A stretch of 52,766 bases of DNA from Anaeramoeba ignava BMAN (GCA_028826165.1 JAPDFW010000045.1:1-52766), one strand, 5' to 3'. Shown: positions 1 through 40,689, counted from the stretch's first letter. Translations and numbers: made by a program. The notes: generated from the sequence alone by a model not told the origin.

Positions 1-254
1 TAATGATCTAATTTTGGAATTGAATTAATAATTGGAACATTTGGATAATTCCAATTTAATTGAATTGAATTTAAATAACTTTCATAATTTAAATTTTGAA
101 CAGAATCAATTTTTGTTGTTAAATTAATTTGATTTGAAGGATTTCCACAAATTTGAGATGGTGTATTACATGCTTTGATTTGAATTGAATAATCAACATT
201 TCCTAATATATCTGAATAAATTGTTATAATTAATTTGATAAAAAATATTTTCAT
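1..254 (-). CDS. Fibronectin type III repeat protein, partial (runs off window; starts mid-domain, possibly a 5'-truncated fragment)
   Basis: Open frame from ATG 254: MKIFFIKLIITIYSDILGNVDYSIQIKACNTPSQICGNPSNQINLTTKIDSVQNLNYESYLNSIQLNWNYPNVPIINSIPKLDH. YxIQIxAxN strand followed by IxLxW matches an FN3 domain boundary. Not in the ORF track because there is no stop in the window. Confidence 0.6.
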   Translation of the reverse strand, partial: MKIFFIKLIITIYSDILGNVDYSIQIKACNTPSQICGNPSNQINLTTKIDSVQNLNYESYLNSIQLNWNYPNVPIINSIPKLDH

Positions 255-372
255 TAAGAATTATTATAATTAATATTATTAAAAAGAATAAAAATTGTTT
301 TCATTCTTTTTTTAGAAAAATGTTTATTTAAAATTTTATTCTATAAAAAAAAAGTTTTTATTTGAATTAAAT

Positions 373-801
373 TCATTTTTCAATTTTGATTAGATCTTGA
401 TTTGAATTTTCAATCTTAAATTGCATTTTCTTTTTTTGTTCACGATTTTGTTGTTTTTTCTTTTTTTGAATTGCTCTTAATCGTTGTTTAAGAATTAATT
501 CAGACATTTTTTGTTGATTTTTCATATTTGTGACAAGTCTTTTATTTGTTTTAATTTCAATTAAATTAACAAGTGAATCTTTTGCTGTCATTTTTTCTTC
601 TTTCATTTTATGTGTTTTTGTCACTTGTTTTTCTTCTTCTGGTTCTTCTGTCATTTGTTTTTCTTCTTCTTCTTGTTTTTGAATTGATTTATTAAATTTA
701 TCAACAAGAGTATTTAATTGTTCATCAAGAATTGGTTGTAATTTTTTCTCTAAATTTCTTTTATTACTTCTTCTTCTTTTACTTCTTACACTTCTTCCCA
801 T
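373..801 (-). CDS. Small basic coiled-coil protein, LLPH/LAPS18 (DUF2423-like) candidate
   Basis: 142 aa; N-terminus MGRSVRSKRRRSNKR resembles the MAKSxRSKxxR start of LLPH-type proteins; Lys-rich C-terminus. Confidence 0.5.
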   Translation of the reverse strand: MGRSVRSKRRRSNKRNLEKKLQPILDEQLNTLVDKFNKSIQKQEEEEKQMTEEPEEEKQVTKTHKMKEEKMTAKDSLVNLIEIKTNKRLVTNMKNQQKMSELILKQRLRAIQKKKKQQNREQKKKMQFKIENSNQDLIKIEK

Positions 802-899
802 TTAAAAAAAAAAAGAAAAAAAATGAAATTAAAAAAAAATGAAAAAAAAATTTTTTTTTTTAAATAAATTAAATTATTTTAATTATAATTTTGTTAATT

Positions 900-1760
900 T
901 TTTTTAATTTCTTTTATAATTAATTTCTAAATGAATTTTAATTTAATTTTAATTTTAATTTTGTTCCACTTTTTGTTTCAATTTCTTTATAATTTGTTTC
1001 TAATTTGTTTCTAATTTCTTTCTAATTTGTTTCTAAATGAAATTTAATTTTAATTTTAATTTTGTTCCACTTTTTGTTTCAATTTCTTTATAATTTTAAT
1101 TTCAATTTCTTTCTATTTTGTTTCAATTTCTTTCTAATTTCTTTCTAAATGAAATTTAATTTAAATTTAATTTTAATTTTAATTTTGTTCCACTTTTTGT
1201 TTCAATTTGTTTCTAATTTGTTTCTAATTTCTTTATAATTTATTTCTAAATGAATTTTAATTTAATTTTAATTTTAATTTTGTTCCATTTTTTGTTTCAA
1301 TTTCTTTATAATTTTAATTTCTTTTATAATTTATTTCTAAATGAATTTTAAATTTCTTTCTAATTTAATTTAATTTTGTTCCATTTTTGTTCCATTTTTG
1401 TTCCATTTAATTTTTTTTTTTTTCACTTTTTGTTTCAATTTCTTTTCTAATTTTTGTTTCTAAATGAAATTTAATTTAAATTTAATTTTAATTTTGTTCC
1501 ACTTTTGTTTCAATTTGTTTCTAATTTTAATTTCTTTTCTAATTTATTTTAAATTTAATTTTGTTCCACTTTTTGTTTCAATTTGTTTCTAATTTGTTTC
1601 TAATTTGTTTCTAATTTATTTCTAAATGAAATTTAATTTAATTTTAATTTTGTTCCATTTTTTGTTTCAATTTCTTTCTAATTTGTTTCTAATTTGTTTC
1701 TAATTTTAATTTCTTTCTAATTTCTTTATAATTATAATTTTAATTTCTATTTTAATTTCT
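900..1760. repeat. Degenerate composite intergenic minisatellite
   Basis: About ten copies of TTTTGTTCCA(C/T)TTTTTGTTTCAATTT interleaved with TTTCTAAATGAA and (TTTCTAATTTG)n blocks. Confidence 0.85.
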
Positions 1761-1763
1761 AAA

Positions 1764-4700
1764 TTAATTTAATTTCATCGAATTTAAATAAAAAGTAAAT
1801 AATTCTTTTAGATCTTTTAAAGAATTAATTAAATATTCAATTTTTAAATTGGTTTTCTTATTTAAATATTTGAAATTCTCTCTTCTTTTCTTAAAAAAAT
1901 CTCCATTTTCATCAAATAAAAACCAAAAATTAGAAAGTGGATTTAAATCATCATCTTTTGAATTAACAAAAAATTTCCTCCATTCCTTATAAGAAAGAGT
2001 AGAAACTTGAAGAGAATTTGAATTCATAATTGAGATAATTTCATTCCAAGAAATTTTTTGAGAATTAAATAAATGAAAAACTTGACCAAATAAATCAGAT
2101 TGAATAGATAAAGAAACAATTGATTGAGAAACAAAATCAACAGGTAAACAATCTTCTAATAAATCTATATCAGGAGTAATTTTCATATGATAAACTCCCT
2201 TTATAAAACTAACAAGGAAATCTTTTTCGTTATAACAATTATTTAAAGAATCTCCCATAATTCTTGATGGTCTGTAAATTTTAATTGGAATCCCCTTTTC
2301 CTTTGCTTTCAAAATCAACAATTCAGAAACGGTTTTTGTTTGTGTATAACCTCCACTTGAATAAAGATTATTGTGAATATACAATGGAAATGCTTCATCA
2401 ATTTCTTCATAATCTTCCTCATAAACTGTCAAAACAGAAATTGTTGATATATAATTGATTGCTTTTAATTGATTCAAACACGATAACTTGATGATTTCTT
2501 TTGTTGAAAGGATATTTGAATTCCTCACTTTTTCATAAGGATAAATATAACTAACAGTTGCTCCACAATGATATATTAATGATACTTTTTTGGATAATTC
2601 GTTGAATTCATTTTCTTCCATTCCAAGATTTGTTTTGGATAAATCTCCTTCTATTGCTATAATTCTTTCTTTAAATTCTTCTTTCCAAATCAAATTTTCT
2701 TTCATTATTCTTTCAATTTTTTGTTTTCCATTTTCATTCTCATTTGCTCTAACTAAACAATAAATTGGTGTTTTTTGTTGTTCAAATTGTTTTAATAAAT
2801 CAAATAATAAAAATGAGCCAAGAAATCCTGTTGCTCCTGTTAAGAAAATACCATCTGGATTCTTCAATTTTTCCAAATCAAATTTCAAATCAATTTTCTC
2901 CAATTCAAATTTTAAATCTTCAGAAATTAACTTTTTTATTGTTGAATCTCCAAAATTTTCATTATTTTCTTTATTGGTAATAATTTCACTTTCTAAATTT
3001 TGAATATTATGAATAGAATTAATGTATTCAACCAATTTTCTTGGTGTTTGATTCATAAAGAATTGGTTAATTGGAATTTTCTCTTTCATTTCCATATTAA
3101 TTTTTGATTGTAAACTTAATAAGATCAATGAATTCCCTCCAAGTTCAAAAAAATTACTATCAAAAGATATTTCCTCAATTCCCAAGATTTTTTGCCAAAT
3201 TGAAATCATTTTCTTTTCCATTTCTCCCAAAATTTCTTGTTCAATTTTCACAATTTCCTTTTCATTAATTTTGGGTTTTTCCAATAAATTGTATTCAATC
3301 TTCCCATTTTGATTTAGTGGCAATTCATTCAAAATTACATAAAAACTTGGAACCATATATTTAGGAAGTTTATTTGAAACAAATTTCTTCAATTCTTCAA
3401 TCAATTTTTCTTTTTCCAAAATTTCTGGTTTTTTAGTAACAATATAAGCAGTTAAATAGCAAGAATTATAATCATTTTCATTAAAAGAAAACATTTTAAT
3501 TGCTGCTTGTGAAACATATGGAAACTCTTGAATAATTGATTCAATTCCTGATATTTCAATTCTATATCCTCTTAATTTTATTTGAGAATCTTTTCTTCCA
3601 AAAAATTCAACATTTCCTTCATGATTAAATCGAACAATATCTCCAGTTTTATATAATCTTTTCTCAGAATTTTTACTAAAAGGATTTGCAATGAATTTCT
3701 TCTTTGTTAAATCTGGATTATTTAGATATCCTTTAGACAATCCAATTCCTCCAACAAATAATTGACCTTTGATTTTAAATTTTAAATAAATTTTTTAGAT
3801 AAATTTTTTAATTATTATTTAATTATTATTTACCCCAAACACCAATAGGAACAGGTTGTAAAAATTGATCTAAAATATATAAATAAGTTTTTGCTAAAGG
3901 TTTCCCAATAAAAACTCGATCCGAATTCTTGTCACATTTCCAATAACTTGCATCAATCGTAATTTCTGTTGGTCCATAAGCATTATAAAATGAAACATTT
4001 TCAGGAAATATTTTGAAAAACTTGTTCATAATATCGTATTTAAGTGCTTCTCCTCCACAAATTATAATCCTTAAAGATTTCAACTTATCTTTGAAAATGT
4101 TGTGATTCTCTAGAAATACTTGAAGATAAGAAGGAACAAATTCAATCACAGAAACTTTTGTAGATGAGATAATTTCCAAAAGTTGAGGAATATCAAAATG
4201 AATATTTTCTGCTCCAATAACAACAGTTCCACCAACTATAAGTGGCCAAAATATCTCTTCAATACAAACATCAAAATTGATTGATGTGTAATTTAAGCAT
4301 TTTATCTTTTTCATTCAAGTTGACAAAGTTTTTGTACAGATAATAACCTTAAAGTTATTGCTTGGTGTTGGATCATAACTCCTTTGGGTTTTCCTGATGT
4401 TCCAGATGTGTAAATAACATAAGCTAAACTTTTCCCATCTATTTCTATTTTTTGCAGTATTTCCTCATAATTAATATTTTCTTTTTGCTCCCAAATATCA
4501 TTTGAATCAATATTGATAAAATTTCCTTCAAAAAATGAGAATTTGGATTTTGTTTCTTCATTGATAATAATTGATTTACACTCTGAATCCTTTATAATAT
4601 TTATCAATGATTCTTGTGGTAAATTAACATCAATAGGTAAAAAACAACAACCTGCTTTAAGAATTCCAATAATTGCTATTATAAGTGGTATTGAACGTTG

Positions 4701-7700
4701 TATCCCAATAGCAATCAAAGAATTTGGGATAATTTTATATTTGTTTATCAAATAAACTGCAAATTGATTAGAATTTTCATTTAATTGTTGATAAGTAATT
4801 TCCTTCCCAAGATAATTCAATGCAATATTTTTGGGTTTTTCTTTAGTAATCTTTTCAAAAATTTTATGTAAGAGTTTTTCATCTTCAGCAAATATTTTTT
4901 CTTTCTTTTCTTTGTTTAGCTTTTTATAATTAAAAGTATATAATATTTTTTCTTTTTCCTTTTCTGAAAGTAATGGAATAAAAAATATTGATTCATTTCC
5001 TTCATTTTTCACAATATATTCAATTAAATTTGTCAAATTATTTGCCATTTGTATAATTGTTTCTTTTCTGAATAAATCCACAGAATATGCAAAAGTGAAC
5101 GTGATATCTTCTTTATTTTGAGATTCACGATTTATTTCTTGGCATTCTAATGATAAATCAAATTTGGAACTTTGATAATCAGCATCATAAATTTCTTGGG
5201 ATTTCACATTTTTTAAATTAAATACACTTCTATCTTTTAAATGCTCATATGAAAACATTACTTGGAAAAGAGGATTATGTGAAGGATTATGTGCAATATT
5301 TAGTAGCCTCACAATTTTATCAAAAGGTAAATCTTGATATTTATGCGCTTCTTCATGTATTTTTTGAATTTCTCTTAAAAAAGAATTGAAACTCTGATTT
5401 GTATGCTCATCAAATTTTGTTATTATTGGAATTGAATTTACAAACAATCCAATAATATTTTCTGATCCTGAATAATGTCTTGATGAAAATGGAACTCCAA
5501 CAATAATATCATTTTGATTAGAATATCTATATAATAATATTTGGAAAACTGATAGCATAACTACAAACATTGTTGTGTTATTTTTTTCTGCAAAATTTTT
5601 CAATTTTTTGAATAATACTTGATCAATTCCAAATTCATAATAGGAACCCTTGAAACTTTGTTTTGTTTTTCTTGGGAAATCAAATGGTAAATTAAGATGG
5701 AAAGAAGATCCACTTAATTTTTGTTTCCAATATTCAAAATATTTGTTCATTTTTTCTGATTTGAACCAATTTTTTTGAGAGAGAATAAAATCAATATAAT
5801 TTAAGTTATGATTTATTTCATTCAATTCTTCTTCAGATACAATTCCTTTTTTCTCCTTGTTTTCAATATAAAAATTATAAAATGAAGATATTTTCTTATT
5901 CATGATATCATGAGAAAATCCATCAAAAATAATATGATGAACACAAATTAAAAGTAGATGGTTATGACCATAATGACAACTTCCACAATTATCTATATTT
6001 TGTTTTTCATTTTCATTATCAATAATGCAAAATAATTTAACTCTATATAGAAAATCGTTGAATAAATCAAAATGTTTGCTTGATTCTTTTCGAATAATTT
6101 GATCAACTTCTTTTGAGGAAATTACACTTCTCTCGATTTGGAAATTTCTATTTTCAATAAATTCTTGGTAATAGTTATCATTTTTCATCAAAATTCTGGA
6201 TCCAAAAATGGGATATAATTTTAACAATTTAGTAAATGAATATTCTAAAGCTTCAATATCTAATTCACCATTTAATTTTATTGGTATTGAGATATTATAA
6301 TTTCCTGGTGATAATTCCTCAAGAAAAAGTAATCTCTCTTGAGCAAATGATAAAGGATAAGGTGATTCTACATTTGGAAATTTTTCAATCATAAATATTT
6401 CATCTTCAAAATTTTGGTTTTTAAAATTTTTAATCAATTCTGAAATTTCCATAATAGTTGGGAATCGAAATATAAGATCTATTGGTAAATTGATTTGGAA
6501 AATATTTCTAATTCTTGATGCAAATAGAAGAACTGATAAAGAGTGTCCTCCCAAAGAAAAGAAGTTATCATTAATTTTGCAATTATCAATGTGTAAAATA
6601 TCTTTCCAAATGCTTTCAATTTGTTTTTCAATTTCATTTCTTGGTTTGAATTCTTCTTTTTCATCATTTAATTCTTCATTTTTGGAAAATTTTAAATAGT
6701 TTGGATCTTGAGCCATCTTCATTAATTTCCCTCTATCAATTTTCTTTCCAACAGTTAAAGGAAATGAATCAAGAAATATCATAATTGAAGGAATCATTGC
6801 TTGATGTAATTTTGGTTTCAAATAATTTAAAATGTTTTTTTTCCTTTCCAAAAATATTTCTTGATTTTCTATTTTTTGTGAATCTTGAGAATAAATAATA
6901 AAAGCAACCAAAATTTGTTTTTCTTTTAAAAAGCAAACAACTGAATTAACGATATTTGGATGTTTATTTAATACTGTTTCAATTTCCATCAATTCAATCC
7001 TAATTCCTCTTAATTTAATTTGATTATCGACTCTTCCCAAAAATTCAATTCCTCCATTTTTCATAAATCTTCCTTGATCTCCTGTTCGATATAAAATCTT
7101 GTTTGAATCATCTTTCGAAAAAGGGTTTGGAATGAATTTCTTTTTGGTAAGCTCTTCTTTGTTGATATAACCTTGAGAAACACATTTTCCTGAAACATAA
7201 ATTTCACCAGGAGCAAAAATAGGAACAAGATTTAATTTTGAATCAAGAATATAAATGGAAGTGTGAGGGATAGTTTTCCCAATAAGTATTTTTTCATTCC
7301 TTTCCAATTTTGAGTCAATTCTATATGATGTAACAATAATTGTTGTTTCTGTTGGTCCATAACCATTGAATAATTTAATTGAATTTAGTTTCAAATCAAA
7401 ATAAAGATCCACAACATTTCTTTTCAATTCTTCTCCACCAGAAATTATTCTTTTCAAAGAAGATGCTAATCTATAAGCTTCTTTATTTTCCAAAAAATAT
7501 TTCAGGAAAATTTCCAGTAAAGATGGAACAAAATTCACTGTTGTAACTGAATGTTGCCAAATTAAATCAAAAATTAAGTTGATATCTCTAAATTTTGATT
7601 GAGGAAGAATCACAACTTCTCCTCCTGTTGTTAATGGAATGAAAATTTCTTTAATTGAAGTATCAAAACTGTAAGATGCTTGATGAAGAAATATTTCTTT

Positions 7701-9815
7701 CTCTCTTTCTTGTTCGTCTTGATTAATGCAATATGCTGTAAGTAAACTATCAATTCTATATGATAAATTTGAATGTGAAATCATGACTCCTTTTGGTTCT
7801 CCAGTTGATCCAGAGGTGTAAATAATATAAGCCAAATCACTAAGTTCATTACATATTTTTGGATTATCTTTACTGATGTGAGAGAGTTGTACTTTCTTCT
7901 TTTTTTGGGAATTTTCTGATATTTTAATAGAAAAATTTCCATTTCCATTTCTATAAAAATTATCCAAAAAAATTATGTAATTTACTGAATTTGGTATTAA
8001 ATTGGAATATTTTTCAAAAGTTAAAATTGTATTAATTTTTGTGTCTTTGATAAAATAATTAAGTCTTTCTTGGGGATATATAGGATCTAATGCAACATAA
8101 CATGCTCCTGATTTTAAAACACTTAAAATTGCAATTATTAATTCAAATGAACGATCAAGACAAATTCCAACAAAAGTATTTGGTTTTACTTGGCAATAAT
8201 CTCTTAAAAAATGAGCCAATTTATTTGATATTTTATTCAAGTTTTTGTAGGTTATCGATTGATTTTGATAAATTAAAGCAATTGAATCAGGTTGTTTTTG
8301 GACTTGAGCTTCAAATTTTTGAAAAATAAAAAATTGATTTTGAGATAAATTTGTTGAATAATCAAAATTTGGATGAATTGAATCATCAAATGTTGATAAA
8401 TATTCAGAAACTAGTAAATTTGGATTTTGTGAAGTGCTTGAAATCAATTTACAGTAACAAGTAATTAGTTGATTGATAAAGTCTAAAGAAAATATTGAAG
8501 TGTTATATTCCACACCAAAACAAATGGAATCATTTTGTTTTTCATAAATAAATGAAAGTTTGTTCATAATTTCTGCAATTTCTCCAGGATATGATTTGGT
8601 TTCAACATCTTCAAATTTTACATTCATAGCAAAATTTGTTGCTGAAAAAGAAACTGAGTACAAATTTGTTGCGTTAATTTGAACAAAATTTTCATCCTTT
8701 CTAAGTAGTTTGATTATTTCTGATAAAGGTAACCATTCAAATTCTTTTGTTTGAGTTCTCATGTTTTGATTTTGAGAGAGAAGATGAAGAAACGACAAAT
8801 CTTTTTTGAATTTTGATTTTAAAGGAAGATTATTAACAAAAAATCCAATCAAATTAGGGAAAATTTTCCTATAAAACATCCCACTTGAATAACCAACTGT
8901 AATTGTTTTTTGTTTTGAAAATTTAAAGAGTAAAACTTGGAAAACGGATACTAAATAGATGAATAAAGTTGTTTTGTATTGTTTAATAAAATTTTCTATT
9001 GAAAACATTTCTTGTTTGTTGATATGAAAATAAATCCGTTTTGCAGATTCTGTAAAGGAGTCTTTGTTGTAATGATAGCATGTTGGAATTTTTAATTCAA
9101 GAGAAGAATCCTTGAAAACATCTTTCCAGTAATTTTCTGCTGATTCAATTTTACTGGATTTTTGCAAAAGTTTTTCTTCAAATTTTAGATAATCTTCCAT
9201 TGTATTTCTTTTAGAATCCAAATTTAATTCAATATTTTGGGATTTTGGATCTGATTTGAAATGAGAATAAAGATTTCTTTTAGAATCCAAATTTAATTCA
9301 ATATTTTGAGATTTTGGATCTGATTTGAAATGAGAATAAAGAAGAGATAAATTATTGAAAAATAAATCTATTGAATAACCATCAATGATAATATGATGAA
9401 AACAAAAAACAATTTTAAATTGATTTTGGTTGAATTGAATAATAGAACAAGAACATAAAGGGAAGTTTTCCAAATTAAAATGATTATAAATTTTTGATTT
9501 GACAATTTTGTTAATTGATTTTTTTGGGTTTTTATTTTGATTTAAATTAATAATTTCAATTGGAATTTCTATATTTTTAGGATGAATAATTTGATAAATT
9601 TTATCATTTTCTTCTTTAAAAGTTGTTCTAAATGATTCTTGGTTTTGAATTAAATAAATCCAACTTTTTTGAAAACTTTCTAAATTAAATTTTCCATTTA
9701 TATCAATTATCCATGAAAGATTATATTTAGAAGTATTTGGATTTAATTTATAATCAATAAAAAGTCTAAGTTGATGAGAAGTTGAAGGAAAAATTTTAGA
9801 ATTATTCATTTCCAA
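1764..9815 (-). CDS. Bimodular non-ribosomal peptide synthetase C-A-T-C-A-T-R (terminal thioester reductase), one GT-AG intron 3833..3767, apparent frameshift near 4311-4320
   Basis: C1 HHIIIDG; A1 YTSGSTGEPKG, FDTS, YGPTE, YRTGD, GRVDNQIKLRG; T1 FFSLGGHSL; C2 HHIIFDG; A2 YTSGTSGKPKG, FDVC, YGPTE, YKTGD, NGK; T2 FFELGGNSL; R domain TGATGFLG and YTQTK. Removing the 67-nt intron gives PVPIGVWG-QLFVGGIGLSKGY in frame. Confidence 0.95.
9204..9341 (-). repeat. 69-bp in-frame tandem duplication inside NRPS C1
   Basis: LYSHFKSDPKSQNIELNLDSKRN occurs twice in tandem. Confidence 0.9.
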
Positions 9816-9825
9816 ATAAAATTAA

Positions 9826-10012
9826 AAAAAAATGAAAAAATGAAAAAATGAAAAAATTAATTTTATTTTTTTCTAATTCTGTTCTCACTTTAAAATTAAG
9901 AAGAAGAAAAAGAAAAAGAAAAAGAAGAAAAATTTAAAAAAGAAGAAAAGAAGAAAAATTAAGAAAAGAAGAAAAAAAATTTTTTCATTTTTTCATTTTT
10001 TTTCTCATTTAA
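9826..10012. promoter_or_regulatory. Bidirectional promoter region (NRPS / RasGAP) with mirrored TTTTCATTTT initiator-like clusters
   Basis: Three AAAATGAAAA copies next to the minus-strand ATG and TTTTCATTTT copies toward the plus-strand ATG. Confidence 0.6.
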
Positions 10013-10070
10013 TTTTTTTAATTTTTCTTTTTGTTTATTTTCTTTTATTTTATAAAATTCAAATAGTGAA

Positions 10071-13000
10071 ATGATATTAAATATAAATCAAAAAGCAATT
10101 GCAAGATTTAATTATGCATCAACTGATCCAAAAGTACTTTTTTTTAATGAAAATGATGAGATTATAATTAACGAACAAATTAATAAAAAATGGGTTAAAG
10201 GAAAATTAGTTAAAAATAATATTGAAGGGATTTTTCCTTGTAAAAATTAAAATTAAATTAAATTAAAAATTAAATTAAAAATTAATTTGAATAAAAATAG
10301 TAAATTATGTAAAACTCCAAAATCCAATAGATCCTAAATTAGATCCTAAATTAAAATATCAAAAAAATTTTAATCAAGAAACTATGGAAATTTTTTTAAC
10401 TGATTTAAATCCAGAAACAAGCTATCTGGAAAGTGCTTTAATAAAAAAACAAACGGTTCCTTTAATAAAACTTTATAAACCAACTCGTTTACCATTATTT
10501 CCTTTTTCTAGAAAAGGTTGGTTAATGATTGGCTCTTCAAATGGAAAATGGAAGAAAAAATATTGTGTTTTGGAAAATCTTTCTTTAAGATATTTTCCTT
10601 CAGAAAAGGAAAATGAAAATGAAATGAAATCAATTTATATTGATAAAATTATGTGTGTAATTCGTGATAGTTTTCAAAAAACAGAGAAAAATTCAGATTC
10701 AAAAACAAAAGCAAATTCAAATCAAAAATCAAAATCAAAATCAAAATCAAAATCAAATAATAAAAATGATGAAAATTTTACATTTAGAATTATTACTAAA
10801 AACCAAAAGAATTATCATTTTCAAGCAAATAGTAAAAAAGAAATGGATGATTGGATAAATATAATTTGTTTGTTCCATGATTTATTGAAATTTTGTTCTT
10901 ATTCATCAACTACTGAAGATATTCCAACATTAAAATCATTGATTCAACTAATGGAAATTGTTTATCGAAGAATTCTTGAAATTAAAAGCAAAAATAATGA
11001 CCAAGAAAACGAGGAAATTCAAACAACATCTAAAACAATTGAGTTGTGGATGAATTTGTTGTTGTTCAAATATTATTTAGTATTAAAGGATAAATTCAAT
11101 GGAGAATCTTATGCAATTTCAATAAGAGACCAAGAATCAGAAGCACAACATGATTTAGAATTAAGGAAATATGATTACCTCAAAATATTGTTTGCCAAAC
11201 AAGAAGAAAAATGGATTGGCAAAGGAGAAAAATCTGATGGATATTTTACACAAGAATCAATAGCGCTATTAGCTTTTGATTCCAATCAAGAAAATGGACA
11301 AAAATCAGATGATAAATTTGATGACGAACCTTTATTTTTTGAAGGAAAAGAAACAAGGAATTTTGTTTCTAATGATTTACCTGAAGGATTTTTAATCAAC
11401 AAAGCTCTCTCAATTCTTAATTATGAAACGAAGACAAATGAGTTTGTGATACAGAAAAATGGGATTCTTTGTTATGAAACTACTCAAGGATGGAAAAAGA
11501 AATATTTGATATTGAACAATTTTTATTTAAATATTTATGCTTCCGACAAGGAAAAAAACCCAGAACAAACAATTCTACTTGATAAAACAACAAAAATTGA
11601 AAAATTACAACCAAAAGACAAAAAGAATATTTTCGCAATCTCAACAAAGGAATATGCTATTTTTAAATTTTATTCAACAAATCTTTTCGTGATTCAGGAA
11701 TGGATTCAAATGATTCAAATATCTATTTATTTACTCAATATATATGAACCAATCAATTCTGAAAATCGCGAAATTGAATCAAAAATTCATGAAATTGAAG
11801 AATTATTGAAATGGATTCAAGAAAGCATTTTGAATTCTGAAATTTTGATTTCAAGTTTGAGAAAAATGGAAAACGTTGGATTTTTCCAAAATGTTTCAAG
11901 AAGACTTTCCTCAAGTCGAAAAAACGAAAAAAATACAATTCTTCAGGATTTCCAAAATCAGCCATTTTTACAAAGACCAAGACAAAAAATACGAAAAGAA
12001 AGAAGTCTATTAAGCACAACTTCCAAAAATCAAACAGAAGAAGAAAGAAGAAAAACAATAGAGAATTTATTGGATCTTGTTGATGATGAAATTGCAAAAG
12101 AGCAGAATGAGGAATCTAATTCTCCACAAAAAAACATTTTAAAACCTGGGATTGTTAGACTTAATACTGATAAAAAAGTTACCAAACGAAATATATACGA
12201 ACTTGAAAGATATCGAAGACGTATTCCAAAAACACCAACAAAGAATATAAACGATGTCAGCTACTATCGAAATATCCGCATTTCAAGTTTATTTCTTGAG
12301 ATTAGTTTGTTTAAGAAAATCAAAAGAAAATTAGTTAAAATTCTTGGAAGATTGAAATTCCCAAATTTATCAAATGATGCTTTTATTGGTTTTACTCTTT
12401 CAAATACAAAAATCGAACCTTCCAACTCTTCTTCACATTTAAATCAGAAAAATATTTTGAAACATGATATTGTGAAAAAACAAGTATTGAAAAAAGAGAT
12501 TGCGAAACCACAAGAAATTAAAAAAGATGAATGGTTTCAAATTGAAATTGAAAACGAAAACGAAAACCAAGAAAGTCGATTCTTGAATATTAAATATCAA
12601 AACGAAATTTGGCAAATTGAAAAATCTAAAGTTATGAATTTCAAAATTGAATCAGATTTTAATGTTTTTAAAATAGATAATAACAATAATTTATCAAATT
12701 CCCAAGATAATGAAACAATTCAATTAAAAATTGATATTTTGGAACTCGAAAAGCTTAAACTCACACAAAAAGAAGCAATTTCACCTCACTCACCCTTATC
12801 AAAAAGAGTTGCTCCTGTTCGGTTCACATATTCATTTTTGAGTGATCTTGAAACCAATTCACGATCTCGAATTTATTCGTTCAATTTAAACAATTTACCA
12901 AGAAAAAAATCTATACAATTATCACATTATTATTTTGAGAAATGGAAACAGATCAATTTAAATGATGAGCAGCAATTTCCCATTTATTGTTCAGATTCGC

Positions 13001-16000
13001 TTTTATTTTTATCAAATAAGAAATGGATAACAAGATGGATTATGTTGAATAATTGGATTTTATCTGTGAATAAATCAAATTACTCACCAAAACCTGAAAA
13101 AATATACGATTTGAGAGATATAATTTCTATCAAGAAAGAAAAAAGCTTGTTTGGACAGAATAATGTATTAACAATACAAATGCCTGATATAATAATTTCA
13201 TTGGCTTCAGAAGACATTTTGAAGAATAGGAGTTGGGTTGATCAAATTAGTGCTTTGTTCAATTTTATTAGATTTATTGCTAGTGAAAATAACGAAAGAA
13301 AGGAAGAGGTTGATATTATTATCTATCGTTTAAAATCCTTGCTTGATTGGATACAACAACAATTGAAAAATTATCAAAAAGAAAAAGAAGAGCACGAGAC
13401 GATGATCCAATTATACAAAGAAATTGATTCACAAACAACTTTTAGTTTTGAAAAGAGAATAGAAATATGCGATTACAAAACAAATCATTTAATTCATTGG
13501 AGGAAAAAAATACTGAAAAGATTATTGGATACAAAATTACCAGAAAGAAATAGAATTAATTTTTATGGATATATATGGAAAAATTTCCCACAAAAATTAA
13601 TGAAACAAAAATTGGATGAGAAAATTATTACAAATTATGAAAAAGGAGATTGGATTATATTAAATATAAACAATGAAAAAACCAAAAAATTTGATTTAAA
13701 TGAATTGATTCATTCGGATCAGGAATTTATTGAAGGAATGATTATAAGAACAAAGGAAAAAGGATCAATTTTTAAAAAACATGTTCATTTGGTTGAAGAA
13801 ATTGAGGTAAAAAAAGAAGAACAAAAAAACGAAGATGATATTTTTCAAATAATACCAGAAACAAAAGATCGAAAAGAAAAGGAAAAAGAAATGGCTTTTG
13901 ACACAGAAAGTATTAATGAAAAAGAACCACCTGTTCATAAAACTGGAGCTGTTTATTTATCTCGTTCGAGATTGAAATTGTCATCAAGATGGAAAATTCG
14001 AAGTATTGAGATTAATGGATATAATTTGAATATTTGTCATATTGATAGTAAAAGAGTATTAAAAACCATTTCCTTAGAAGAATCAAGCGAATTATCAATA
14101 CTTGACAAAAACAACCCAAAAATCCCAAATATAACATCAATTCCCAAATGCTATCAAAATAACATAATTTCAATTACAAGCAAATAAACAAAAAATATTG
14201 TTTGCTTTTTCTGCAGAAGAAGAACAAAAAGATTGGCTTCAAAATTTCCAAATACTGAATTACTTTCTGTTTCTCTCTAATATTGTTGTTGAATATAATT
14301 ACACAGTATCAAACAACACGGATAATAAGGATGGAAATCATATTCATCAAAACCGAAACGAAAATCTTGAATCAATAAAGAAAATGTATCATAATGTCGA
14401 ACAAAGGAAAGAATTACTTTATAAATCAGCATTCCAAAATCGGCATTTTACACCATTTAAACAAGGACAATTACGACAGTTCTTGAACAAAAGAAGAAAA
14501 TCTTGGATATATTACTCACATCCGTGATTGGGTTGATGAACAAATTCGAAACACAGAGGAAGATGTGCGTGTAACAAAGGAAATGCTTTCTATTTGTCAA
14601 GAAAATAATATCGAAGAAAGTATAACAATTGAAATGAAAGGAATTTGTTGTTGGAGCAAAAAAGAACATTAGAAAATTGGAGAAAAAAAATATTGCCAAT
14701 TTTGCTTAGAATTTATTTGAAAAATAACGAAGATTGTAAATCAAAAGGTTATATTTCAACATCAAACCAAAATATCAAAAAGAAAATGAACCAAATGAGA
14801 ATAATTCTGAAAATGAAAATATTTGTGAAAAAAAATGGGTTGAAATTGAGGAAGAAATCAATCAAAATATAGGAAATGAGATGACAAAATACAAAGTGAA
14901 ATATGAAGATAAAACTGAAATTGTTGATGAAAATGAGATTGAGATTATTATCCCGGCAAAAATTATGCAAATCAAGAATTTTTTTGCGAATCCAATCCAT
15001 GAAATACAGACAATAATATCAACACCAAAAACATCCAAAACATCCAAAAATCAGGACGGAAAGAAGTAATTGATGAAGATGATGGTGATGTTGAAGATAT
15101 TGAAAGTTCAATCAAGAAGAAAACAATTATTTGATATGCTAATTTCTTATGAATCACCAATTCTGGAATTTTTAATCATTAAAACAAACGTTTGCAGATG
15201 CAGATTTGATAAGTAAAAATTTGTTTCTTATTTTCAACTCAAAAAATCAAGTTCTGGAATTAATTGAGTTTGCAATCAAAACTGAAGTGGAAAAAAACAA
15301 AATCGGAAAGTTCTTTATTTCGAGCAAATAGTGTTGCAAATAAAATGATGACAAATTATTCACGATTAATTGTGAACGAATATATGATTCATATTCTCCA
15401 AAAACCAACACAAGAAATAATTGAATTGCTATCAAATTACGAAGGAAATCCTTTTGAAATTTATCCAAATCCAGATGATCGAGAAAGTTTCAATAAAGAA
15501 AATTTAGAAAGAATCCAAATTTATGCCAAAAAATTTCTTGATTCAATATTGGATTCGATTAGTAAAGTTCCTCTTGGTTTAAGATATTTATGTGCGAAAC
15601 TCAACGAAATCACAAGTCAATTTTTCAGTGAATCTCAATATGTTGCAATTGGAGGACTTGTTTTCCTTCGTTTGATTTGTCCCACTATTGTTGCACCAAA
15701 TGTATTTGGGATTTTGGATCAAAAAGAGAAAATTACACCCAAAATTAGAAAGGCTTTAGTCGTCATTTCAAAGATTATCCAAAGCATTTCAAATGGATGT
15801 TTATTTAAAGATGCGGGCGAGCTTGTTTTGCTCAATGAATTTGTTGAGGAATCAATTCCAAGATTGAAAGGATTTATGGACTCATTAATAAAACCTGTTT
15901 ATTGTCTTGAACCAAAACCAAATGATGAATTAAATGAAAATGTTGTTGTTGTTGATCAAAAAGAAAATGATTTGGTTGTTTTTAAAGTTTCTGAAAATTT

Positions 16001-16154
16001 ATCAAAATGTTTTTTAGTTTCTTCAAATCGTTTTGATTTAGAAAGAAAAATTATTGAAAATATTCCAATTGAAAAATGTTCTCTTCCTTCAAAAAATGAA
16101 ATTGAATCTGCATTAGATAATATTTATAATTTGGATAATAATTCCTCAAAATGA
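10071..16154 (+). CDS. SH3 - multiple PH - RasGAP protein (intron 10240..10300; several frameshifts in 14180-15295)
   Basis: Exon 1 plus splice gives an SH3 domain (AIARFNY...KWVKGKL...GIFPLNYVK). Four PH-like domains (RKGWL..WKKKY..WINII; KNGIL..WKKKY..WIQMI; WITRW..WVDQI; KTGAV..WKIR..WLQNF). C-terminal RasGAP with SLFRANS arginine finger and VFLRLICPTIVAP. Confidence 0.85.
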
Positions 16155-26239: not shown

Positions 26240-29200
26240 TTAATTCTTATCATTATCATTATCATTTTCAATTTCATTTTCATCTTCATTTTCATTTTCA
26301 TTTTCATTTTCATTTTCATTATCATTTCCATTTTCATTTTCATTTTCATTTTCATTTTCATTTAAATCAATTTCGTTTTCGTTATTATTATCTTTATCTT
26401 TATTATCTTTATTATCTTTATCTTTATCTTTATCGTTTTCATTATCATTATCATTATCATTCAAATCAATTTCGTTTTCTTTTTTAATGTTATCATTATC
26501 ATTATTATTATTATCTTTATTATCATCATCACTTGAATCATCTTCTAAAATTCCTTGTGTTTCTGATTTGTCTTTTTGTTTAAAGAATTTCTTTTCAAAA
26601 TAATTTCTAAATACTTTAATTCTCATTAAAAATATGAAAATAATCAATGCAATAATTAAAACAAAGAAAATAATTTCAAGAGCTGTTGTTGTTCTTTTCA
26701 ATGTTTTCGAATTTTCTTCATTGAATCCAAGTGTATATATTACTGCTTTTCTTACATTCATTAATATTCCAACAAAAGTTACTAAAAGGAATAATTGATT
26801 ATAATAATAATATTTCTTTTCTCGATATGAATTATAACTGAAAATAAACAAATAAGAGAAGCAAAATACAAAAACAACAACCAATGAATTGATGAAAGGA
26901 TTCCAAACTAATAAACTTAGCAAAATAACTATAATTCTGATAAAAAATTCAATAGAATCCCAAAAATATAACTTTTTAGTATAAAATTCTGCAAAGAATT
27001 GTGCAAATACACTTTTGTAATAACGTTCTTTTGTTCTTTTTTTTCGATATATAAATATAAAAAGATAAATTGGTGTTGATAAAATAACAAAAATCAATAT
27101 AATAAGTGCAAATATTTGCCATCCTTGATAACAATGAATATTCCCATCATAAAAAAAACGTTTCGTTTCTTTTCCTGCTATTTTCATGTTCTTGCAATCA
27201 ATTAATTTTATTGTTGTTTCTGAAATTGGGAAATAAATGAACATTATCAATGATATTATTGAATTTTTGAATTTATATTTGAGTGAATTTATATCAACAA
27301 ATTTTGAAATTTTGGATTTTTGATTTTTTCCAAATGAAACTGTTTTTTTATCTTTTTTGATTTCATCATTATCAATATCAGTATCAGTATCAGTAGTTGT
27401 TGTATCTTTATCTTTTTCTTTTTCTTTTTCTTTTTCTTTTTCTTTTTCTTTTGATTCATCTTTCTTTTTTTTCCTTAATTTACTAATCCATGTACTTATT
27501 CCCCAAACTGGAAAAAAAGTAATCAAGTAAATCAATATTGTGATATAATTCATTGCAATTTTACCAGGTGATGATAATTTAGTAAAAGGACATATTCCAA
27601 AATCATTCATAGGAACCACAAATTCTAATGAAAAAAATAAAGATAATGAATAAATGATTTCTGAAATAACTGAACGTGTTTGAGAAATTGGACGAGATTG
27701 AAGAGAGAATTTGCAAAAGAATCTGAGTGTCTGGAAAAAAAGAATAAACATTTGGAAGATATTTCTTGATTCCATAAATTTGTGGAAAAGAATCATGAAT
27801 ACTAAACCAGTGATAAATGCTCTAAGGAAATAACCAGCAAATTGATTTTTGCAATTATTAGTATTTTTGCATTCAGGATAAGTTGTCATAATTTCTGTGT
27901 AACCTTCTGGACATTCTCCACACAAATCACCGACTCTTTGATTGGAACAACTATCATAAAATACACATGATCTCTTATTGCAACAATAATTTTCAGGACA
28001 CAACGAAGAATCTGCGGAATTTGATGACATAGCAACAGAAACCCAAAATCCAGTGGAAGCATTAACAGAATTTGTGCCATCACAAACAATTCCGAGATCG
28101 CATTCTTGGCAAGGATATGTATCACTATCACTATCTGTTTCAATAAAAGAATAGCTTGCATAAGGGCATTGTGAACATCCAATTTCTGAAATAAATGAAG
28201 TTTGATCGAATGGCTCATAATAATATCCTTCTGTGCATGTAAATACATTTGAGTCCGATAAAATACCACCAACAACAGGAACTCTTGTATACAAAAATAA
28301 ATCTGATTCCAATGCAGCTTTGAATGTTGAATTGTAAATTTGGAGCACTGCTGTGTGATTCTCGTCAAAATCATCAATATCCAAATAGGACACAATATCC
28401 GATCCAAATTCTCCGTAATTTCGGGAAAATTTAGAATTTGAAACCTTCATGTTTCCTGTTCCTGTAATTACAACAGCTCCTCCAGAACCAGCCGTGTTTT
28501 CAATGAAACTACAACTATCGATTGTAATTTCACCATCGATTTGAAGAAACATTGCACCACCAGAAACGTGGCCAATGTTTTTCTGGAAAGTTTCATTGTA
28601 GAAAGAAGCCTGGAAACGTTGATCTGGAGGCGCTCTTGGGTCGTAACAATTGATATAAATACCTCCACCGTTTTTCGTGTTTGAATCGGAGTATTGATTG
28701 TTTTCAAAGTGAAACTCAACATTTCTTTTTGATCCTGAAAACGTGATTATTACAGCAGATCCTGCTACAGAAATAAACGTGTTCTGATAGAAATGAAAAA
28801 TGTTGTTTTCTGTTAATCCAGTCATATCGTTGATAGCCAAATAGATTGAACCTGTTTGGATGAATTTGTTGTTCAAATACTCAAAAGAAGAACTTCTGAC
28901 ATAAGCCGAACCGAAAAATGAAGTTGGCACAACGTTTTTGAAATAATTCCCTTCAAAAACCATTTGATATCCTTTGAGACCCGTTGGAGAAATCATGAAC
29001 AGAGGACTGAATGATTGTTGGTCAGAAATGAATGTATTTGAGTTGACTGTGAGGGTGATATTTTGGGCGTAATCCAAAAAAAAGGCAAGAACTGGAGAGG
29101 GACTTGAAATGATATTATTCTCAAAATAAAGGGAGATCTCTTTTGAATTACTTGTGTACAAATTGATCAATTCAGGTTGTTCGTTTTGGATTGTGATGTT

Positions 29201-30295: not shown

Positions 30296-33200
30296 TTAAT
30301 TTTTATCATTTAAATCAATATCATTATCATTATCATTATCATTATCATTATCATTATCATTATCATTATCATCATTATCATTATCATTATCATTTAAATC
30401 AATATCATTTTCATTATCATTTTCATTATCATTATCAATATCATTATCATTATCATTATCATTATCATTATCATTATCATTATCATTTAAATCAATATCA
30501 TTTTCATTATCATTATCATTATCATTTTCATTACCATTATTATTATCATTATCATTATCATTATTATTATCATTATTATCATTATTATCATTATTATCAT
30601 TATCAATATCATTATCATTATCATTATCATTATCATTATCATTATCATTATCATTTTCATTATCATTATCATTATCATTATCATTATCATTATCATTATC
30701 ATTATCATTATCATTATCATTCAAATCAATTTCATTTTCATTTTCATTATTATTATTATTATCATTATTCAAATCAATTTCATTTTCGTTTTTAATGTTA
30801 TCTTTATTATCACCATCACTTGAATCATCTTCTAAAATTCCTTGTGTTTCTGATTTGTCTTTTTGTTTAAAGAATTTCTTTTCAAAATAATTTCTAAATC
30901 TTTTAATTCTCATTAAAAATATGAAAATAATCAATGCAATAATTAAAACAAAGAAAATAATTTCAAGAGCTGTTGTGGTTTTTGTTAATGTTTCCGAATT
31001 TTCTTCATTATATCCAAGTGTATATATCACTGCTTTTCTTACATTCATTAATATTCCAACAAAAGTTACTAAAACAAATAATTGATTATAATAATAATAA
31101 TATTTCTTTTCTCGATATGAATTGTAATGGAAAATAGATAAATAAGAGAAAACAAACACCACAGCAACAACCAATGAATTGATGAAAGGATCTAAAATGA
31201 ATAAACTTAGCAAAATAACTATAATTCTGATAAAAAGTTCAATAGAATCCCAAAAATATAACTTTTTAGTATAAAATTCTGCAAAGAATTGTGCAAATAC
31301 ACTTTTGTAATAACGTTCTTTTGTTCTTTTTTTTCGATATATAAATATAAAAAGATAAATTGGTGTTGATAAAAGAACAAAAACCAATATAATAAGTGCA
31401 AGCTATTTGCCATCCTTGATAACAACTTATATTCCCATCATAAAAAAAACGTTTCGTTTCTTTTCCAGATATTTTTAAACTCTTGCAATCAATTAATTTT
31501 ATTGTTGTTTCTGAAATTGGGAAATAAATGAACATTATCAATGATATTATTGAATTTTTGAATTTATATTTGAGTGAATTTATATCAACAAATTTTGAAA
31601 TTTTGGATTTTTGATTTTTTCCAAATGAAACTGTTTTTGTATCTTTTTTGATTTCATTTTCATTTTCATTTTCATTATCAGTATCAGTAGTTGTTGTATC
31701 TTTTTCTTTTTCTTTTTCATTTTCTTTTTCATTATCTTTTTCTTTTTCATTTTCATTTGATTCATCTTTCTTTTTTTTCCTTAATTTACTAATCCATGTA
31801 CTTATTCCCCAAACTGGAAAAAAAGTAATCAAGTAAATCAATATTGTGATATAATTCATTGCAATTTTACCAGGTGATGATAATTTAGTAAAAGGACATA
31901 TTCCAAAATCACCCATAGGAATCAAAAATTCTAATGAAAAAAATAAAGATAATGAATAAATGATTTCTGAAATAACTGAACGTGTTTGAGAAATTGGACG
32001 AGATTGAAGAGAGAATTTGCAAAAGAATCTAAGCATTTGGAAAAAAAGAACAAGCATTTGGAAGATATTTCTTGATTCCATAAATTTGTGGAAAAGAATC
32101 ATGAATACTAAACCAGTGATAAATGCTCTAAGGAAATAACCACCAAATTGATTTTTGCAATTATTAGTATTTTTGCATTCAGGATAATTTGTCATAATTT
32201 CTGTGTAACCTTCTGGACATTCTCCACACAAATCACCGACTCTTTGATTTGTGCAGCTTTCAGAATATTCACATGATGTCTTATCGCAACAATAATTTTC
32301 AGGACACAACGCAGCTGTGACTTCGTTGAGATCTTTATCAATAGAAGTCCAAAAACCAGTGGAAGAATTAACACTATTTCCTCCTTCACAAGAATATCCA
32401 AGATCACATTCTTGGCAAGGATATGTATCATTATCACTATCCTGAATAACGAAAGAGTAAGTTGAATAAGGGCATTGTGAACAAGATAACTCAGTGATAA
32501 CTTCTCCCAATTCATGGTAGTCATAATAATATCCTTCTGTGCATGTATAAGTAGTTGCGTTTGTTAAATAATAAGTAGCAACAGGCACGTTTGTATACAC
32601 AAACAAGTTTATATTCGGTGCAGCTTTGAATGTTGAGTTGTAAATTTGGAGCACTGAAGTGCTCGAATTTCCTTCGGTGTTATCGACTTCCAAATAGGAC
32701 ACAATATCCGATCCAAATTGGGCATAATTCTCAAGAAATTCCGAATTTGAAACCTTCATGTTTCCTGTTCCTGCAATTACAACAGCTCCTCCAGAACCAG
32801 CCGTGTTTTGCACAAAACTACAGCTATCGATTGTTGTTTCACCATCGATTTGAAGGAACATTGCACCGCCAGAAACTTGACCAGTATTGGTTATGAAGGT
32901 TTCATTGTAGAAAGAAGCCTGGAAACGTTGATCTGGAGGCGCTCTTGGGTCGTAGCAATTGATATAAACACCTCCACCGTTTTTCGTTTTAGCATTGGAG
33001 TAGTAATTGTTTTGGAAATTGAATGTAATGCCGAATTTTCTCTCAGAAAGATAGATTGAAACTGATGCTTGTGTTGATCCGTTGAAGTAATTCCCGTCAA
33101 AATTAAATGCGTCATTTGCTGTTTTTCCAACAAGATCAAAAGAATTCAACGAAATCGGACCAGCTTGTTCGAATTCATTATTGGAAAAAGTGAAAGTAGA

Positions 33201-40505: not shown

Positions 40506-40689
40506 AAAAAATGAAAAAAAAATGAAAAATGAAAAAAGTTTTTTTTTTTGTTTTTGTTTTGATTTTGATTTTGATTTTGATTTTGATTTTGATTTTGATT
40601 TTGATTTTTGTTTTTGATTTTTAATTTAATTTTCATTTTTTCATTTTCATTTTTTCTTTTCATTTTTTTTTATTTTTTTTTTCTTTTAA
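40506..40689. promoter_or_regulatory. Bidirectional promoter (GINS4 / CNNM)
   Basis: AAAATGAAAA x3, (TTTTGA)n spacer, then several TTTCATTTT copies. Confidence 0.6.

Follow-up and report, generated by a model that had tools for sequence, protein, structure and literature searches.

Whether a nonribosomal peptide synthetase (NRPS) of bacterial type can be a resident and working gene of a protist is the question raised by one contig of Anaeramoeba ignava BMAN (GCA_028826165.1, JAPDFW010000045.1). The window analysed here is this entire contig of 52,766 bp, in an assembly of 42.8 Mb and 147 contigs. The gene, M0811_14704, spans 9809..1764 on the minus strand and encodes condensation (C), adenylation (A), thiolation or carrier (T) and terminal reductase (R) domains in the order C-A-T-C-A-T-R; its first exon is 100% identical to the deposited hypothetical protein. 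Multimodular NRPSs are seldom met with except in bacteria and fungi. The analyses point to a genuine NRPS of familiar type, probably obtained by lateral transfer, in an unusual host; that the gene is a true resident with the C-A-T-C-A-T-R architecture is hardly in doubt. The fuller statement, that the window copy is a broken paralog of a laterally acquired, resident NRPS present in two copies, is held as a whole to be moderately probable, while the function of the gene is a matter of prediction.

Domain content and exon structure

Pfam profiles were searched against the open-frame pieces, motifs were read directly, and single exons or the deposited proteins M0811_14704 (P0001) and M0811_11149 (P0270) served as queries. 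The minus-strand frame beginning with the ATG at 9809 has 1,832 codons and ends in a TGA at 4313-4311; a second frame runs from 4314 to 3826 and a third from 3740 to 1764. The first piece (9815..4311) holds a Condensation domain (447.8 bits), an AMP-binding domain (387 bits), a PP-binding domain, another Condensation domain and the first part of a further AMP-binding domain, the middle of which (profile positions 208-370) is found in the piece 4314..3826; the piece 3740..1764 contributes AMP-binding_C, PP-binding and NAD_binding_4, the last at 206.7 bits. The features of the gene are as follows.

9807..9809, minus strand: start codon (MNNSKIF...), identical to the start of both deposited proteins, P0001 and P0270
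8391..9797, minus strand: C1, N-terminal condensation domain; PF00668 split into profile positions 3-167 and 170-447; HHIIIDG at 9398-9378
9204..9342, minus strand: 69-nt tandem duplication (23 aa x 2); period 69, 2.0 copies, 98% matches
6750..8315, minus strand: A1, adenylation domain (Pfam); pocket code DTKNIGGIIK, read by hand
6432..6623, minus strand: T1, carrier domain (PF00550, 49 bits); GGHS serine codon at 6542-6540
4941..6365, minus strand: C2, LCL-like condensation domain; HHIIFDG at 5939-5919
3300..4838, minus strand: A2, adenylation domain (Pfam), split by the frame break and the intron; pocket code DVEEIGAIDK, read by hand
4292..4316, minus strand: frame break, due to a G at 4316 and one A of the run 4294-4292 that the paralog lacks; TGA at 4313-4311
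4233..4323, minus strand: "intron" of the deposited model of M0811_14704, 91 nt, GT...AG; coding-like, 26% guanine plus cytosine (GC)
3767..3833, minus strand: GT-AG intron, 67 nt, phase 1 (G3833 T3832 ... A3768 G3767), 6% GC
3021..3209, minus strand: T2, carrier domain (PF00550, 53.5 bits); GGNS
1887..2849, minus strand: terminal thioester reductase (PF07993, 206.7 bits); TGATGFLG, ISTISV, GGYTQTK
1764..1766, minus strand: stop codon; the homology with the paralog ends ca. 40 nt beyond, at 1725

The domain order proposed in a first-pass annotation of the window is borne out, all domains being found by the Pfam scan and both HHxxxDG motifs, GGHS, GGNS, TGATGFLG and YTQTK lying where that annotation had placed them. 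The core motifs A3 to A10 are complete in A1; in A2 of the window copy as assembled the series is cut by the stop between A3 and A4, and it is complete in the paralog. The closest solved relatives of C2 are the C domains of DhbF, Txo1/2 and TycC (E 1e-50 to 1e-44). The 69-nt duplication lies directly after the active-site motif of C1 and is common to both paralogs.

The GT-AG intron announced at first pass has exactly the predicted ends. It has in-frame stops, and its removal restores the A8 core by joining ...PIGVWG to QLFVGGIGLSKGY. The intron is used in both deposited models, its version in the paralog measures 66 nt, and the comparison of the paralogs places three 1-nt indels within these 67 nt versus two in 8 kb of exons. 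From these features 3833..3767 is, in all appearance, an intron of the spliceosomal type.

A twin copy and a break in the assembled reading frame

Positions 1-10432 of another contig (C99) correspond to an inverted copy of window 1725-12096 with 96% identity. The product of this twin is M0811_11149 (2,658 aa, on a contig of 244,254 bp), which reads through. Within ca. 8 kb of coding sequence the two copies differ by 124 substitutions and by two indels only, and both indels form the frame break. The two insertions are 22 nt apart and the TGA falls between cores A3 and A4 of A2, just before A4, where the twin, which lacks both bases, reads ...LCQLNEKDKMLNYTTIGFDISIEEIFWPL..., a canonical A4 core. 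Only two copies of the stretch around the break occur in the assembly. The frameshift that had been suspected at 4311-4320 is present in the assembly, with two changes of frame; the intact enzyme that the first-pass annotation had in view is found in the paralog on the other contig, while the window copy, as assembled, is broken in A2.

As a separate observation, the codon at 4276-4278 differs from that of the twin at all three bases (AAT versus GGC) and lies inside a short ATCA-ATCA-AT tandem adjoining both insertions. This codon and the insertions suggest either one complex mutational event or a local artefact of the consensus.

In the deposited model the break is masked by the removal of 4323..4233, which deletes ca. 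30 aa including the A4 core FDxS and yields a protein of 2,629 aa. The predictor chose this segment because of its GT...AG ends and because its removal keeps the frame. Both properties would be expected if the deposited model were right and a 2,629-aa protein bypassed the break, yet this is very improbable: the segment has 26% GC, like coding sequence, as opposed to 6% in the genuine intron; the corresponding part of the paralog is translated in frame as ...LNEKDKMLNYTTIGFDISIEEIFWPL..., with the conserved A4 core and the Asp of FDxS; and the loss of this stretch would in any case leave the protein with no functional second A domain. The deposited model of M0811_14704 is thus flagged as an annotation error, in which a false intron hides a frame break.

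Mosaic divergence of the two copies

Between the copies, the ratio of non-synonymous to synonymous substitution rates (dN/dS) is 0.37 and significantly below 1, with 41.5 synonymous and 65.5 non-synonymous changes. Synonymous divergence (pS) is uneven along the duplication, with ca. 0.03 in the NRPS gene, 0.009 in 10384-10998 and 0.18 in the SH3 exon and in 10999-12096 of the neighbouring gene. Differences within the NRPS gene are clustered (coefficient of variation of the gaps 1.3) into four islands, at 7751-7460, 5408-5084, 4337-4266 and 2558-2354, in which local pS and its non-synonymous counterpart (pN) match the old flank values; between them lie unchanged stretches of 400-500 nt. Two of the islands cover the substrate pockets. 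In the duplicated SH3-PH gene (window 9816-12096 versus twin 1-2346), indels are multiples of three and the PH frame of the twin is open; the twin contig ends inside this gene. The pattern identifies the pair as probable older duplicates which have been homogenised by gene conversion and have kept islands of old divergence.

That the two copies might be alleles was considered and rejected, since homology stops at 1725, the flank has a pS of 0.18 and the rest of the contig is single-copy, no second copy of it being found in the assembly outside window 1725-12096.

Substrate pockets

Code positions were set by motif offsets and read by hand, and were checked on an alignment to Txo1/Txo2, which showed the Ser signature DVWH-S-L-D. 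The codes of the two copies are as follows.

A1 pocket code: window copy DTKNIGGIIK, twin DTESIGSIIK
A2 pocket code: window copy DVEEIGAIDK, twin DIEDIGAIDK

The copies differ at 5 of the 16 variable code positions, with codons starting at 7652, 7535, 7364 (A1), 4269 and 4143, which is an enrichment relative to the gene-wide rate (p = 3e-5) and to the synonymous rate (p = 0.005). One of the changes, at A1 position 239, places Lys in the window copy and Glu in the twin. The A2 code resembles published codes for Orn (DVGEIGSIDK) and Arg (DVADVGAIDK), and that of A1 in the twin resembles one for Lys (DAESIGSVCK); such likenesses are a lead only and not a test. Whether the C-terminal residue of the product would be basic (Orn/Arg/Lys-like) is judged about evenly balanced from these codes.

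Status of the window copy

On the evidence of the sequence, the break has a little better than an even chance of being real in the organism. The inserted G at 4316 stands outside any homopolymer, and the FDxS site beside the break reads FDVC in the window copy, with Cys at a position occupied by Ser in 92% of 60 relatives and in the twin. Downstream of the break, non-consensus residues are found at 11 sites in the window copy versus 4 in the twin, as compared to 7 versus 6 upstream (one-sided p = 0.06). The other long open reading frames (ORFs) of the contig (5.5, 3.8, 3.7 and 3.1 kb) are uninterrupted, so that the general rate of indel errors would be low. If the break is real, the healthy appearance of the rest of the window copy would be due to conversion from the intact twin.

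In a serious but less probable alternative, the extra bases are assembly or polishing errors at a duplication of 98.5% identity; A. ignava would then carry an undamaged window copy, and two working paralogs with diverged pockets would make two products. A dN/dS of 0.37 indicates purifying selection, and the enrichment of differences at pocket positions is what two functional, diverging enzymes would show. The only coding indels in 8 kb lie 22 nt apart within a locally divergent patch, and one of them lengthens an A-run from AA to AAA, as errors in long reads typically do. Against this alternative stand the other insertion, which is not within a homopolymer, the conserved Ser replaced by Cys, the excess of non-consensus residues after the break and the unbroken state of the other long ORFs. 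Several points nevertheless weigh against a real break and the broader reading built upon the pair. The asymmetry of 11 versus 4 is marginal only, and, the region being duplicated, the two insertions might have arisen as errors of consensus calling or polishing. The break region is a 70-nt patch with nine differences, including the whole-codon change AAT versus GGC, and could be a local assembly artefact; elsewhere in its 8 kb the gene is free of stops and frameshifts. The pocket excess is weaker under the mosaic model (A1 alone, p ca. 0.03, an estimate) and may partly reflect the position of the unconverted islands, and the specificity codes, read by hand and set beside published ones, are leads.

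A bolder version of the intact alternative is unlikely. It would have conversion spare the pocket islands and selection maintain two specificities, the NRPS being a diversifying synthetase of leupeptin-like aldehydes with a basic C-terminus; the window copy would be functional and the break an assembly error. Were this true, the products would act on proteases of the phagolysosome or symbiosome of the amoeba, or on the bacteria that colonise it. Between these possibilities, the window copy is still preferably read as the broken member of the pair.

Residence in the amoeba genome

The divergent neighbour of the NRPS gene and the element placed before its start codon are as follows.

9829..9854, minus strand: three overlapping TTTTCATTTT units, an initiator-like host promoter element, 18-45 nt upstream of the NRPS ATG
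10071..16154, plus strand: divergent eukaryotic neighbour, with an SH3 exon (10071-10250), a PH ORF (10384-14187) and a RasGAP ORF (15264-16154)

The motif TTTTCATTTT occurs 49 times in the window versus 13.9 expected, a count reached in none of 100 shuffles, and it stands 14-35 nt upstream of the NRPS start and of at least six other ORFs of the window, on the correct strand. The claim of an upstream motif shared with host genes is therefore upheld, as is that of a host-like base composition, the NRPS gene having 24-25% GC and the adjoining ORFs 26-33%. Anaeramoebae are metamonads related to parabasalids. In Trichomonas, transcription starts are fixed by the initiator (Inr) HCAHW, located no more than 30 nt upstream of genes (PMC7370421), and TTTTCATTTT contains TCATT, which fits HCAHW. 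Arrays of a TTTTCA(TTTT) unit were also observed within and between ORFs, at 26289-26358, 31657-31753 and 40508-40666; as the unit is not confined to the stretch before start codons, the initiator-like motif belongs to simple repeats as well.

The start of the NRPS gene and that of the SH3 exon are ca. 260 nt apart, each with its own TTTTCATTTT copies, so that the intergenic stretch looks like a bidirectional promoter region. The head-to-head RasGAP gene of the first-pass annotation is indeed divergent and on the plus strand, but it begins with the SH3 exon and the PH ORF, the RasGAP domain being confined to 15264-16154. The arrangement of the NRPS gene with an SH3-PH gene is present on two separate contigs, and the window contig also encodes a PUF protein and a D123 protein.

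That the NRPS gene is bacterial contamination or part of a chimeric misassembly, outside the amoeba genome, would be in keeping with relatives that are all bacterial and with a xenic culture of a host that bears bacterial symbionts (PMC11550330). Its probability is next to nil when set against the GT-AG intron, the initiator-like motif of the host, the GC content of the gene, the absence of any relative above 32% identity, and an SH3-PH gene ca. 260 nt away in the same arrangement on two contigs. The first-pass annotation, which had considered contamination unlikely, is corroborated by the SH3/PH/RasGAP, PUF and D123 genes on the contig, by the intron and motif, and by the second copy on a 244-kb contig.

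Origin and other NRPS loci

The best non-self matches of the NRPS show at most 32% identity, and the named ones among the 120 matches listed are all bacterial, many of them cyanobacterial, in agreement with the earlier description of a bacterial-type bimodular NRPS ending in a reductase. For the R domain, bacterial C-A-T-R proteins of ca. 1,500 aa come nearest in the database (37-41% identity), fungal reductase domains ranking far lower, and no A. flamelloides protein was found among these R-domain relatives. In a tree of 129 rows built on this domain, the pair sits on a long branch with odd composition and without a supported sister group. A donor search with exon 2 against protein representatives found none, the summed A-T matches of giant multimodular NRPSs outranking the R-terminated relatives, and the first homology search returned no Logan member in the cluster of the NRPS gene. 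The gene is accordingly regarded, from its relatives and its context, as a probable lateral acquisition from bacteria that is now a resident nuclear gene.

Condensation domains were detected on eight contigs of the genome, and the NRPS loci other than the pair show just 27-28% identity over the part in common. On contigs C114, C101, C59, C68, C115, C8 and C97, six further condensation-domain loci, with open frames of 1,450-2,420 aa, were noted, as was a separate frame of 1,209 aa on C97 whose T-R part is 30% identical to the NRPS gene.

Release, priming and predicted product

The reductase passes the cut-offs of both models that describe it (TIGR01746 on the paralog P0270, 276.4 versus 213.35; PF07993 on the window copy, 206.7 versus 20.1). 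Compared with solved structures, it is far closer to MxaA (4u7w, E 2.7e-63) than to AusA (E 1.2e-13), and its TGATGFLG, ISTISV and GGYTQTK line up with the corresponding motifs in 4u7w (TGxxGxxG, catalytic Thr/Ser, Tyr and Lys). MxaA performs a four-electron reduction, to the alcohol. Given this proximity, the product may equally well be an alcohol or an aldehyde, and the release of an aldehyde on the model of AusA, as first proposed, was overstated.

For the first domain, the proposed role of a starter C that N-acylates the first residue is suggested by position only. No module precedes C1, which begins at residue 3, and its best matches in the database are internal elongation C domains at 24-27% identity, 7 of the top 40 being N-terminal. 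Among solved structures it matches TycC best (5e-21), versus 1.4e-17 for the C-domain entry of surfactin synthetase, which we take to be a starter C.

One protein of 266 aa with AASDHPPT_N and ACPS domains, a phosphopantetheinyl transferase (PPTase), is encoded on contig C113 and is listed as M0811_12138 in the orthology table of the genome paper (PMC11550330). Activation in trans, as the first-pass annotation had supposed, is thus plausible, the genome search for an Sfp-type enzyme having found this single AASDHPPT/Sfp-type PPTase.

The following mechanism is proposed for the intact form of the enzyme (ca. 2,650 aa), assuming that it is expressed. The sole AASDHPPT-type PPTase would prime T1 and T2; A1 would load a polar or charged residue (with Lys at position 239 in the window copy and Glu in the twin) and A2 a basic, Orn/Arg/Lys-like one; C2 would condense the two residues, to which C1 may add an acyl or a peptidyl group. 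The MxaA-like reductase would then use NAD(P)H to free the thioester, yielding an aldehyde or, if it reduces twice, an alcohol.

Whatever the state of the window copy, there is a sizeable, if lesser, chance that the product is not an N-acyl dipeptide aldehyde: C1 could be fed by another of at least six NRPS proteins of the genome; it could be inactive, with a free dipeptide aldehyde cyclising to an imine or pyrazinone; or a double reduction, like that of MxaA, could give an amino alcohol. The kinship of C1 with internal elongation domains and its lack of preference for the surfactin synthetase entry point in this direction, as do the proximity of the reductase to MxaA, with its four-electron reduction, and the NRPS loci on six other contigs. 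On the other hand, the HHxxxDG of C1 is intact, and a collinear bacterial C-A-T-C-A-T-R gene (P0091) stands without a partner NRPS, which fits a self-sufficient starter C.

Relation to the published genome

Anaeramoeba houses sulfate-reducing symbionts inside a dedicated symbiosome. The 2024 genome paper of Jerlstrom-Hultqvist et al. mentions "several non-ribosomal peptide synthases" for Anaeramoeba, proposes that NRPS products influence the choice of bacteria that colonise the symbiosome, and lists in Supplementary Data 7 seven antiSMASH NRPS regions for A. ignava (PMC11550330). Two of these, 140.1 (1-29,809) and 55.1 (1-30,394), fit the window contig and the twin contig, assuming that a region extends to the gene end plus 20 kb (PMC11550330), and appear to be the same loci as the NRPS gene and its twin. 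The existence of the gene is therefore already published. In the paper, the antiSMASH class is given without architecture, reductase, frame break, paralogy or gene conversion, or pocket codes, and the available supplement text does not include the locus tag M0811_14704 (PMC11550330). What is new here is the anatomy of the gene, the frame break, the twin, the conversion mosaic, the pocket codes and the type of reductase.

These data make the authors' idea of symbiont selection testable at one locus, with a defined architecture, reductive release, a predicted charged dipeptide with a basic C-terminus, an intact paralog and a single PPTase; such a role may be that of the enzyme. The conversion, together with the retained divergence of the pockets, is also of interest for the way in which an assembly line obtained by lateral transfer changes within a eukaryote.

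Other observations on the contig

Between the PH and RasGAP ORFs (14187-15264), ca. 1 kb of coding-like sequence with ca. 30% GC undergoes at least five changes of frame, with no AT-rich intron between the pieces. The end of a PH domain (...FAFSAEEEQKDWLQNF) lies within this interval, one frame off from the 1,267-aa ORF. The SH3-PH-RasGAP gene may be decaying or unusually spliced. Elsewhere, the interval 38000-40000 contains a satellite of at least 2 kb devoid of any G or C, with a unit of ca. 12 nt of the type AATTTTATAAAT, and a repeat of ca. 140-170 nt at ca. 16520-16690 matches more than 260 sites spread over many contigs, with identities of 75-87% and often in tandem arrays.

Comparison with known systems

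Among characterised enzymes, AusA/PznA, the aureusimine synthetase of Staphylococcus aureus (A-T-C-A-T-R), is likewise bimodular and ends in a reductase, which releases a dipeptide aldehyde (PMC8210680). The AusA model NF047350 scores 1079 bits, being second-best among NCBIfam models overall and the best of those for a named enzyme, at a score far below its cut-off of 2500. AusA differs in having no N-terminal C domain, where the window gene has C1, in a reductase structure that is only a distant match (E 1.2e-13, versus 2.7e-63 for MxaA), and in its substrates, Val and Tyr/Phe, whereas the pocket codes read here point to charged residues. Gut commensals have dipeptide-aldehyde NRPSs that are also small and R-terminated and are likened to the window gene by description only; their products inhibit proteases, some of them being stabilised by an N-acyl tail (Guo et al. 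2017 in PMC8210680). These enzymes provide the model for the first-pass proposal, in which the role of protease inhibitor is conjectural. Among the matches listed, one is from Lachnospiraceae, at 22% identity.

In its release domain the window gene stands closest to MxaA of the myxalamid system, with which TGATGFLG, STxS and YxxxK are aligned (4u7w, E 2.7e-63), and its A2-T2-R part matches 917 positions of the model for MxcG of the myxochelin system (NF038078; 846.6 bits, below the cut-off of 2300). C-A-T-R proteins of the MxaA/MxcG type are, however, single modules fed by other proteins, while the window gene is bimodular. A further likeness is to uncharacterised C-A-T-C-A-T-R genes from bacterial metagenomes (P0088, P0089 and P0091), of which P0091 is flanked by neither a partner NRPS nor tailoring genes. 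These genes differ in having no intron and a bacterial genomic context and are 28% identical to the window gene, with which they are collinear over the full length and share the same seven domains.

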